Assembly (NCBI GenBank): GCA_964247055.1
Contig: OZ176052.1
Span: forward strand, 4,092,001 to 4,156,000
Source: Paragordius varius
Lineage: Eukaryota > Animalia > Nematomorpha
Length of the DNA: 64,000 bases
Direction of reading: 5' to 3'
Shown: positions 51,990 through 55,200 of the stretch, piece by piece
Layout: every line of letters begins with the position of its first letter
Position numbering within the stretch: the stretch's first letter is position 1
Notes under the pieces: model-generated
The model's database searches: none
What the model was told of the DNA's origin: nothing
The model's input: only the letters and a program-made list of their open reading frames with translations
Position numbers and translations under genes: made by a program

Positions 51990-52193
51990 TTATTTTTCCA
52001 AAGTCGCATAATTCAATAATTTTTCAATCAGATCAACATGACCAAGTAACATTCTTCTGCAACAATATCTTTTTAGCCCTAAGGAATCAAGCGCATCTCC
52101 TTCTGTGTATTCGGCTTGCAAAAGGCCCAAATAAGCTTCCCATTTATTGCCGATAACTTTTCCACAAGTAAAACACCGAATGGGGATCAACAT
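51990..52193 (-). CDS. POLR2L: DNA-directed RNA polymerases I/II/III shared subunit RPABC5 (RPB10), intronless
   Basis: [12 protein letters not shown]...[25 protein letters not shown], full-length 67 aa with the zinc-binding CxxC and CC motifs. Confidence 0.98.
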
Positions 52194-52217
52194 GGTTCAG
52201 GACATAACGTGAATGTA
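52194..52217. promoter_or_regulatory. 24-nt gap between the RPB10 and INTS12 start codons
   Basis: Sequence GGTTCAGGACATAACGTGAATGTA, with a small inverted repeat ACAT-AACGTGA-ATGT and a possible acceptor TTCAG at 52196-52200. Function is inferred. Confidence 0.35.
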
Positions 52218-55200
52218 ATGAATTTTGACCCTCTTTTAGTTAAAGCTTTGCAATTAATTAAAGGCAGGGATGATGGGACTGTTACCACGCAATTAGAAGA
52301 TATTCTGGAAGAATTAATTGTAAAGTATAATCATATAGAGGTAATGATATATTCTAAAACTATTAGAAAAAAGAAGTTATTGTCACGACGGATGTAGAAA
52401 AGGTTAATTAATTTATATAAGTTAAGATTAAACGAGATCTAATTGATTTAGGTGGTGGAAGTTTGAATAAAAAAACAAAAACTAAAAATAAGGTTTTAAT
52501 TTATATATATCTAAGGAAATTGATAATACAGATTTATCAGATATATTTGGTGATGTAAAAGATTTAGACGTAAATGATGATGATTTAAATATATCAATTG
52601 CTAATGTTTGTGTGGTTTGTAGGTAATGTTAATTTTATATTAATTAGAAAATCAAAAAACGAATTTGGCGATCAGCTTATCGAATGTCAAGATTGCCATG
52701 ATTCCTATCACCAAGTATTTCGTTATAATATTTGTTTGATAATTTAACGTATATTATGCAATCTAAAAATGATAAATTATATATCTTGAGTTTTATACCC
52801 TTAGCCTTCAATATCTAAAAAATATTAACAATATGCATATTCAATCTATGACCCTTTACACTACGGGTCTCCAACACAATTGAATTCGCGGGCCGCATTT
52901 TGCGATAAAAAAAGTCGACGGGCCGCATTCGCAAAATATATGGAAATTGAAATATTTTATCACATTTCAAAAATAACACCCTATAAATTAATAAAATAAT
53001 ATATTAATTTTAGCTAGTTCATTTGCGAAATTCGTGACGATTTATTCAGAAAATTGATTTATATATAAATTTTACCTAAATTTTGTAAAATTTTAAATTA
53101 TTCGCGGATTTTCGAAGGGCCATATATATAATGTAATTAAAAAAGCTTTTTGCCGCATTTTTTTTAAATTCTTGAATATAAATACATTGCATTTTATTTA
53201 ATTCCAAATTCAGGGTAAATGTTAGTTCTTAGCAGCTTTTATTTTATTATAAAGGATTTGGGACAAAAAAACCTCCATTATTCTCTATACAAAAATGGCA
53301 AGATAATATAATGTTAAAAATAATAACCAAAACCGTATATTTTTAGTTTTAAAAAAATATATGATTTTAATTAGGATCTTAACACGTCGTAATCAAAAAT
53401 AAGTTTTCTGAGTTATTAATTACAACTTTTTATTAACAACATTAATAAGTTAATAATATTAAATTGGAAAAAATTAGTTTGAAACAAAAAAAGTCGCTTT
53501 TGAGTATTATTTTTATTTTAAGTGAATAAATATATAATAAATTATGAAAATTAGGTTAAAAAATAATAAAAAAATCCAAAATTATCGTTAATTCAAACTT
53601 AAAATGCACTGATTTGAAGTGTGTAAGGACCAACTTTAAATGTTCAAGGACACTCTTAGAGTGCAAATGGTTTATCTGATTATATTGTTCTCCGCTTCTT
53701 TTCTAATAAAAAACGTTCTAGGAATATATCTGTATGGTTAGATAAAATATCTTTTTAAAAATTCTTTTCGAAAAACGCATTTCTGATTAATTTACAATTT
53801 TTCGTTTATTTTATACTTTTATCTGTGTGTGTTGTCTTTGTAACTTTTCAATAATTACAGAGAAATATAAAATGTGTTTATCTAATGGCGACCGAAATAA
53901 CATTTATTAAGGTCTCAATTAAAATATTTCCATTTTTTGATTTTTCACTCAATACAGAATTGTCATACACCATCCATTACTGAAAATGTGAATGACCCCA
54001 GATTTGTTTGGTATTGTTTCAATTGTTCATCACCAACCCCTACTAAAACCAATAATTTCAACAATGTTAATTACATAAATCCTGGAAATAACAATTTTAA
54101 CAATAATAATAGTAATAATTTAAATAAGTTTGCAATATCAAATCAAGGAAAGATGCATTTAAACACTAAAACCAATAACTCACTTCCATTAACATTGAAA
54201 CATTCTAAAAATGTATCGTCTAATAATCACAAACCCCAAGTTAACCCTATTACTAAAGCAATACCAAGCGGAAATTTAAAGGGTATTCACATATTTTTTA
54301 TACTTTTTTCAGACAAAAAAGCATTTGGATTAACATGCCGCTTTTTTAACTTTACACAATAATTTATGTAACGATAAAATAATTTTTTTTAAAGGCATTA
54401 CTGGTATTACAAATATCGACGCCACAAACCTTAATAAAAAACGGATAATTGATATCGATTTTATGGGAAACATTAACAGTAATAATAGCAACAATGTTAA
54501 CATTAAACCTCGTTACTTTGCAGTAAGTTGTGGGGTGCCCACAGTCTCAAATCATCCATCATCCCTCCTAGTGAGCAATGCTAAAACGACCAAAACATTA
54601 TCATTTACTAGTATCACCAATAATACAAAAGTATTTTCAGCTATGAAATCAGTCAATACTAATAATAATACCAATAATAATAATAATCAATCTTTCAACA
54701 TAAACAGCAACATTATAAAACGTAAAGTATCTGACCCTAGCACTGCGATTGGCAATGTTTCCAGTTCCAATAATATTTCTGTCATGAACAAAACGAATAC
54801 GGGTAATTATATACATAATACTTTTTTATACGAAATTACAGTTTTTTTAAACAATTTATTGTTGTGGAATAACAAATATTTTGGTTATTTAAACCAGTAA
54901 ATTTTCTGACAGATTGAAACATCTAGCACACAAATACATTTTTAATTTAATTTCATACGTATTAATAATAAATATAGATGGTTAACTTTGCATAATTATT
55001 ACTAAGAATCGCCGTTATACAGTTTATTTAATATACCGGTTTAACTATATAATAAATTTTAGATAAACAGTGAATTTATCATTTTTATTGGTTTAATGTG
55101 TCCAACACGCGGCCTGCGAAAGTTTTGAACTTTTGTAATTTGCCAAATACGTTCATAAACTCTTTTTAAAATGGGAGGTTCTTTTGTCGATTTTTAATAT

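Follow-up and report, generated by a model that had tools for sequence, protein, structure and literature searches.

Introduction

Gene pairs that diverge from one short bidirectional promoter, and head-to-head genes whose 5' ends overlap, are well known, as described in PMC10887517. The bidirectional pairs are recognised by the distance between their transcription start sites (TSSs; below 1 kb, typically 100–300 bp) and lie in CpG islands (Rosikiewicz et al. 2021, as summarised in PMC10887517). Here we analyse a divergent pair of the hairworm Paragordius varius (Nematomorpha), located in a stretch of 64,000 nt (assembly GCA_964247055.1, contig OZ176052.1, positions 4,092,001 to 4,156,000; the whole stretch is called the window below), in which the genes for the RNA polymerase subunit RPB10 and for the PHD-finger protein INTS12 begin with start codons 24 nt apart on opposite strands. 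We propose, with a probability of roughly 0.45, that both genes are served by one shared, TATA-less, ultra-compact bidirectional core promoter, which would give rise to very short, crossing leaders without an added spliced leader. By the usual view, animal promoters of RNA polymerase II (Pol II) require at least some 100 bp between divergent starts, and animal mRNAs require leaders of sufficient length for scanning. If the starts lie where the sequence suggests, the locus would be a test case for two pre-initiation complexes sharing one site, and likewise for the shortest leader that an animal ribosome accepts and for start-codon choice free of context.

The described bidirectional pairs resemble the present one in that divergent housekeeping genes are placed on one short region with no TATA between them and with 5' ends that likely overlap (PMC10887517). 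Unlike those pairs, the verified pairs of this genome have the start codons themselves 15–75 nt apart amid intergenic DNA of kilobase length, and the RPB10/INTS12 region has 37–42% GC. Genes with a TISU element (translation initiator of short 5' untranslated regions) have leaders of ~12 nt and a combined transcription and translation element (PMC2518114, PMC3177215). The likeness to them consists in housekeeping genes, an element at a fixed place by the ATG and implied leaders of about a dozen bases. However, the TISU consensus SAASATGGCGGC includes the start codon, whereas here a CANNTG palindrome lies upstream of the ATG, and the consensus is found neither at RPB10 (AACC before and TTG after the ATG) nor at INTS12 (TGTA before, AAT after). 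The E-box CACGTG occurs in promoters of ribosome-biogenesis genes across holozoans (PMC2570694). E-box core promoters share with our pairs a CANNTG palindrome near the start of TATA-less housekeeping promoters, and a palindrome suits two-way use; unlike there, the centre is variable in our case, CACGTG is absent from the nine spacers and it is the ATG, rather than a mapped TSS, to which the palindrome keeps its distance. An E-box motif was also reportedly found among Drosophila core-promoter elements by Ohler et al. in 2002, and to our knowledge no factor is known to bind the CANNTG palindrome seen here.

The SL1/SL2 spliced leaders of nematodes, with their outrons, would equally free the ATG from a templated leader, and nematodes are the sister phylum of hairworms; unlike in nematodes, no spliced-leader (SL) gene or acceptor signal was found here. 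The short-leader initiator promoters of Giardia, Trichomonas and microsporidia are comparable: transcription begins between a few and about 15 nt ahead of the ATG, Kozak context is missing and divergent genes are tightly packed. These are compact protist genomes, whereas the present genome is that of an animal with transposon-filled intergenic DNA and TATA-containing histone promoters. The arrangement described here differs from the known kinds in its scale, in its AT-rich animal setting without a CpG island and in the combination of a fixed-distance palindrome with the lack of Kozak context.

Results

The RPB10/INTS12 spacer and its immediate surroundings comprise the following features, given in window positions; ORF stands for open reading frame.

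51990..52193, minus strand: RPB10 (RPABC5/POLR2L) coding sequence, single exon, 67 aa, stop codon included (ORF list)
52191..52193, minus strand: RPB10 start codon, CAT on the plus strand (read directly and ORF list)
52194..52217, no strand: spacer between the RPB10 and INTS12 start codons, 24 nt, GC 0.42
52196-52200, plus strand: TTCAG, initiator-like, ending 17 nt before the INTS12 ATG
52203-52211: CATAACGTG, with CA and TG five bases apart (CA-N5-TG)
52209-52213: GTGAA
52213-52218, plus strand: minimal upstream ORF ATG-TAA, its stop overlapping the INTS12 ATG
52218..52340, plus strand: INTS12 exon 1, 41 codons, beginning with ATG; the frame runs on into the PHD exons

The initial annotation had put the RPB10 CAT at 52191-52193 and the INTS12 ATG at 52218-52220, 24 nt apart, and both positions are read directly in the sequence. 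The pair has the geometry of a bidirectional pair, i.e. opposite strands, diverging direction and start codons well within 1 kb. RPB10 matches the Pfam family RNA_pol_N (PF01194) with E = 4.1e-33 over profile positions 1-58 of 58, on residues 2-59. This full-length match includes the N-terminal zinc-binding CxxC typical of RPB10/RPABC5 and, starting at profile position 1, bears out the earlier view that the N-terminus fits the family; arthropod RPABC5 orthologues are 94–96% identical to the protein. Two codons ahead of the RPB10 ATG, its frame is closed by a TGA, and therefore the ORF cannot be extended. No other PF01194 match is present in the whole 110.5-Mb genome. As a single-copy gene for a subunit common to RNA polymerases I, II and III, RPB10 must presumably be expressed.

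The INTS12 gene continues on the plus strand through the following predicted elements.

52367-52402: exon 2 (GT..AG and frame)
52427-52492: exon 3 (GT..AG and frame)
52516-52622: exon 4 (GT..AG and frame)
52648..52714: exon 5, with the first half of the PHD finger (E = 0.0031 against Pfam PHD for an overlapping ORF; frame)
53958..54110: start of exon 6, second half of the PHD finger (phmmer match to PDB 1WEV, E = 8.1e-6; frame)
52341-52366 (26 nt), 52403-52426 (24 nt), 52493-52515 (23 nt) and 52623-52647 (25 nt): predicted GT..AG micro-introns
52715-53957: predicted long GT..AG intron of 1243 nt between exons 5 and 6

Boundaries, phases and frames of INTS12 were computed exon by exon, the splicing being read from frame and GT..AG only. 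The frame is intact from the ATG at 52218 through five introns into the PHD finger. Exon 5 matches Pfam PHD weakly, and the 1WEV match of exon 6 includes the DPR-VWYC stretch of an INTS12-type PHD finger. We take 1WEV to be the PHD domain of mouse INTS12/PHF22; the search itself names it only as a RIKEN cDNA. The N-terminal exon 1 gave no match in Pfam, PDB or Atlas, and the largest of the INTS12 exon ORFs had no relative in a word search. INTS12 is expected to have a conserved N-terminal helix that begins near residue 1, and the first residues encoded by exon 1 may resemble residues 8-40 of the human protein. Upstream of the start codon the frame is open to 52116 (ORF list) without an in-frame ATG, so that the earlier claim of no preceding in-frame ATG holds for contiguous sequence.

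A 401-nt contig from run X1 agrees with 51901-52301 at every position, and the region is likewise covered by X3, a run from a different study, so the 24-nt spacer is not an assembly slip. Runs X1 and X3 behave as DNA; run X6 is of low depth and its contigs keep the micro-introns, which makes it DNA-like as well. A search for sequencing runs found none recorded as RNA that contains the stretch, and run X7, presumed to be RNA, yielded nothing here. Within 52100-52340 the GC content is 0.365 with 5 CpG, one of them in the spacer, compared with a GC content of ~25% for the window; a CpG island over both first exons, as in mammalian-type bidirectional pairs, is not found in this interval. The minus strand of the spacer holds an upstream ATG-TCC-TGA before RPB10, and both minimal upstream ORFs, this one and the ATG-TAA, end before or at the true start. 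No AG occurs on the minus strand within 36 nt of the RPB10 ATG. The reasoning of the initial annotation that 24 nt force either very short leaders, a 5'-to-5' overlap or spliced-on leaders is sound.

Compact divergent pairs recur in the genome. The geometry of RPB10/INTS12 is found in at least eight further pairs, the spacers being measured between start codons.

Coiled-coil gene (minus strand)/YTHDC2 (plus strand), 23630..23690: second compact pair of the window, 55-nt spacer
Boxes of this spacer, 23630..23690: two inverted CACATG/CATGTG, 26 nt and 16 nt before the respective ATG
MRPS26/archease: 23-nt spacer, verified
ELL/EIPR1: 15-nt spacer, verified
SNIP1/ALKBH1: 23-nt spacer, verified
SMC1A/PFDN4: 75-nt spacer, verified; the SMC_N profile begins at SMC1A residue 3
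Prefoldin/eIF4A3-like gene: 69-nt spacer, gene fetched for other reasons
E2 enzyme/301-codon ORF: 68-nt spacer, gene fetched for other reasons
Rab/small membrane-protein ORF: 126-nt spacer, gene fetched for other reasons

The second pair of the window, with CAT at 23630-23632 and ATG at 23688-23690, has the 55-nt gap that had been reported for it, and both divergent pairs of the window thus have spacers of 55 nt or less. Among 19 genes that were not picked for this trait, all three divergent partners found within 600 nt lay within 130 nt. The compact spacing exceeds chance. Profile searches for further pairs with PF10229 (MMADHC) and PF08357 (SEFIR) gave no match. The histone H2B-H4 divergent pairs of the same genome have 312–314 nt between start codons (L021 1789-2100; L022 1145-1458), with a TATA 78–82 nt before each ATG (−78/−82) and CCAAT boxes. 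Since the TATA-to-ATG geometry of the histone genes is ordinary, the compact pairs represent a distinct promoter class. The suggestion of a genome-wide unusual mode of initiation therefore stands as far as the recurrence of compact pairs is concerned; for all genes it is not shown, the histone pairs being conventional (312 nt, TATA/CCAAT). A common theme of Pol II and snRNA transcription, which RPB10 and INTS12 had been thought to share, is unsupported because the other compact pairs join unrelated housekeeping genes.

Start-codon surroundings were compared in 33 genes, 14 from seven pairs and 19 controls (Ras-family, E2 and prefoldin genes) with N-termini that fit the respective family. CANNTG lies wholly inside seven of nine spacers, with 9 hits against 1.17 expected (P = 4e-6). 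Counted from its CA, it stands 11–18 nt before the ATG in 11 of the 33 genes (9 independent motifs) and 24–26 nt before it in five more, compared with 2.6% of 12177 ATG triplets in the fetched DNA that have CANNTG at 10–19 nt (P ~1e-7). The short spacers of 15, 23 and 23 nt carry a single box in the middle, and those of 55 and 75 nt carry two boxes, each beside its own ATG. The centres vary (CA, TA, AA, GA, AT), and canonical CACGTG does not occur once in the nine spacers. A fixed distance between CANNTG and ATG is hard to explain unless a start site is nearby and leaders are short and uniform, which is therefore what we expect for these genes. Within 48 nt of ATGs, TCA shows a roughly 1.5-fold excess. 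TCA at −12 to −21 was promising as a motif in the pairs and was rejected since it is absent in 14 Ras-family controls. TTCAC/GTGAA, present in 5 of 9 spacers including that of RPB10/INTS12 (P = 0.0014, post hoc), was likewise dropped as a motif of its own and is now read as the flank of E-box-like sites.

About 80% of animal start codons usually carry a purine at −3. At this position the 33 start codons have A 7, G 10, C 8 and T 8 times, i.e. purines in 17 of 33 (P = 2e-4 against ~80%). Taken by itself, A is under-used (7/33) and G over-used (10/33) at −3, and positions −5, −4, −2 and −1 are A-rich (14–17/33), an odd start context for an animal. Upstream ATGs at −40 to −3 are not depleted, with 13 against 12.3 expected in the controls and 32 against 22.3 in all genes. 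The usage at −3 and the undepleted upstream ATGs would fit leaders too short to matter.

Discussion

In the arrangement that we propose, RPB10 and INTS12 would be two intact, expressed housekeeping genes placed head to head on a shared core promoter. Both TSSs would fall within the 24-nt spacer or immediately next to it, and the leaders would measure roughly 10–25 nt. The 5' ends of the two mRNAs would cross by a few bases, which requires that the two leaders together exceed 24 nt. Starts at the CA 52203-52204 (plus strand; A 52204) and at the TG 52210-52211 (minus strand; opposite T 52210), for example, would yield leaders of 14 and 17 nt overlapping by 7 nt. At a CANNTG palindrome, two opposed CA initiator steps would start two mRNAs 3 nt apart, which would likewise cross. 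The first usable AUG would be taken without Kozak-type context.

Several points weigh against this proposal. The palindrome at its fixed distance and the odd start context are observed in other genes; CANNTG is absent from the RPB10/INTS12 spacer, which has CATAACGTG instead. Start-site positions and leader lengths at this locus are deduced from DNA, and the placement of the starts by analogy, via CA-N5-TG, is the weakest link. The presumed leaders would carry upstream ATGs, namely the ATG-TAA at 52213 for INTS12 and the ATG-TCC-TGA for RPB10. CANNTG was found post hoc in a small sample of 33 starts, 14 of which were picked as pairs; in the 19 controls its enrichment is weaker (5 at 10–29 nt, P = 0.003), and an unbiased positional 4-mer scan of the start surroundings gave no significant motif after correction. 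AT-rich eukaryotes such as Plasmodium tolerate many upstream AUGs, and undepleted upstream ATGs alone therefore do not prove short leaders.

The main rival to a shared core promoter is a deep 5'-to-5' overlap with each promoter inside the partner gene. RPB10 would then start in the zone of INTS12 exon 1 and its micro-introns, INTS12 would start in the RPB10 coding sequence, and both would have ordinary leaders of 50–200 nt, antisense to the N-terminal codons of the partner. Head-to-head protein-coding pairs with overlapping 5' ends are an established class and make up 23% of human divergent pairs within 1 kb (PMC10887517). The micro-introns clustered around compact promoters would fit the constraint exerted by a partner promoter inside the gene, and an RPB10 leader from this zone would gain few upstream AUGs, since 52221-52340 contains a single CAT on the plus strand; about two are expected there by composition, however, so the low count is not significant. 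An INTS12 leader from inside RPB10 would in turn carry upstream ATGs at 52180 and 52192, one of which is made by a rare CCC proline codon, with no sign of avoidance. Such an overlap also leaves unexplained the fixed 11–18 nt distance of the palindrome and the clustering of spacers at 23–25 nt, and we regard it as possible but rather unlikely. It is also conceivable that the 24 nt have no bearing on initiation at all, either because the true INTS12 N-terminus lies in an unseen upstream exon or because one of the genes is silent. The INTS12 N-terminal exon has no relative by any tool and the frame upstream of its ATG is open, which would allow for a mis-set start. Yet RPB10, a single-copy gene, matches its profile from position 1, the INTS12 frame stays open from 52218 across all five introns, its first residues may align with residues 8-40 of human INTS12, and the same geometry is present in at least eight other pairs, so that an explanation of this kind appears very improbable.

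Leaders might also be supplied by splicing. INTS12 could have a first exon, non-coding or short coding, to the left of RPB10 that is spliced to the AG at 52199-52200, in which case RPB10 would lie antisense inside the first INTS12 intron and the two promoters would be separate. Animal introns often harbour small antisense genes, the TTCAG at 52196-52200 ends 17 nt before the ATG, and the frame is open from there to the ATG. This TTCAG had been named as a plausible acceptor for INTS12; it is present, but its pyrimidine tract is poor and it is equally initiator-like through its TCA. Upstream of the AG the tract is poor in T and contains two G's, whereas the own acceptors of INTS12 are A/T-rich (TTAG, TAAG, ACAG). 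RPB10 would still be without room for a leader of its own, having no AG nearby, and half of the 33 genes lack an AG in the last 30 nt, so this would be no general solution for compact pairs. A cis-spliced leader is in our view improbable. The initial annotation had further considered trans-splicing, by which, as in nematodes, a capped leader would be added at an AG just upstream of each ATG, with the true promoters farther off. Hairworms are the sister group of nematodes, and the library searched contained no paper on trans-splicing, operons or untranslated regions (UTRs) in Nematomorpha. The genomic signals disfavour the idea. When up to 3 mismatches are allowed, the genome has four matches to the nematode SL1 22-mer and two to the reversed control. 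Of the four, two correspond to ends of a repeat family that lacks a GT donor, one is in a coding exon, and none of them resembles an SL gene in terms of leader exon, GT donor, Sm site and multiple copies. The 5S genes are dispersed without a common flanking gene and thus without a 5S-linked SL gene, and an Rfam SL1 search was blank, a weak result as 50 of 37936 candidates were scored. As with RPB10, no AG precedes the archease ATG inside the spacer, and SNIP1 has none over 80 nt. Over the final 30 nt upstream of the 33 ATGs, 25 AG are found compared with 47 expected from composition, and 16 genes have none, whereas in a nematode-like system most start codons should have a strong 3' splice site a short distance upstream. 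A novel leader attached far upstream is conceivable, although it would leave the spacing unexplained. We consider trans-splicing very improbable for these genes.

Going beyond the single locus, and with greater reserve than for the RPB10/INTS12 promoter itself, we speculate that hairworms might possess a class of housekeeping genes built on a palindromic, two-way CANNTG initiator 11–18 nt before the ATG. The mRNAs of such genes would be nearly leaderless, and position, not Kozak context, would determine their start codon. One palindrome per divergent pair would serve both genes, and the two mRNAs would be complementary at their extreme 5' ends. The class would coexist with ordinary TATA promoters and would parallel, in an animal, the short-leader systems of Giardia, Trichomonas and microsporidia. 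The locus also bears on the question whether trans-splicing predates the split between nematodes and hairworms, and the genomic signals tend to argue against this. In annotation, such starts will be placed wrongly by gene finders whose training assumed UTRs of ordinary length.

Additional observations

The following observations concern the two genes, their surroundings and other loci met in the course of the analysis. RPB10 is intronless here, while in many other animals the genomic ORF runs on into an intron directly behind the EYTEG motif. An exact-protein look-up in the contig collection returned no record of an identical RPB10 protein. Residues L2 and T64 occur in none of the 120 best database matches; RPB10 is too conserved to single out hairworm kin, and no hairworm relative was picked out among these matches.

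In runs X1, X3 and X6, no variant sites are listed over 51813-52616, an interval that takes in RPB10 and the spacer as well as INTS12 exons 1-4 together with the micro-introns. By comparison, 12 variant sites are present in the 800 nt that adjoin it on the left; contigs drop rare variants, so that constraint is only hinted at. A 310-nt contig of run X6 equals the window over 52080-52187 and leaves it at 52187/52188, in the second codon of RPB10, for 202 nt. In the RPB10 frame, this foreign part would extend the gene by eight codons and an upstream ATG; its first 30 nt are absent from the whole genome at up to 2 mismatches. The contig could be chimeric, could reflect a structural variant or could stem from another lineage, and 48% of the aligned X6 contigs run on into unlike sequence.

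GT..AG micro-introns of 23–27 nt are seen within the first few hundred bases of genes that adjoin compact promoters. Besides the four of INTS12, there is one of 26 nt in PFDN4 (L016 846-871) and one of 27 nt in the eIF4A3-like gene (L015 ~1884-1910).

A dispersed repeat family ends in an SL1-like stretch (2–3 mismatches) with no GT donor after it. Copies were found at L003 1500-1560, L005 1500-1560 and window 42300-42345 (minus strand), and one copy lies ~80 nt upstream of the 317-codon ORF 41264-42217.

Two identical, full-length, intronless Arf genes (E = 5e-75) with 234-codon open frames are present on two small contigs (C10:1742354-1742869 and C11:1307069-1307584). They may represent duplicated contigs, haplotigs or foreign DNA.

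RPB10 is separated from the next gene by 9.7 kb of transposon-rich DNA, which holds the ORF 49036-49479 with the C-terminal motif of a non-LTR (long terminal repeat) retrotransposon reverse transcriptase.

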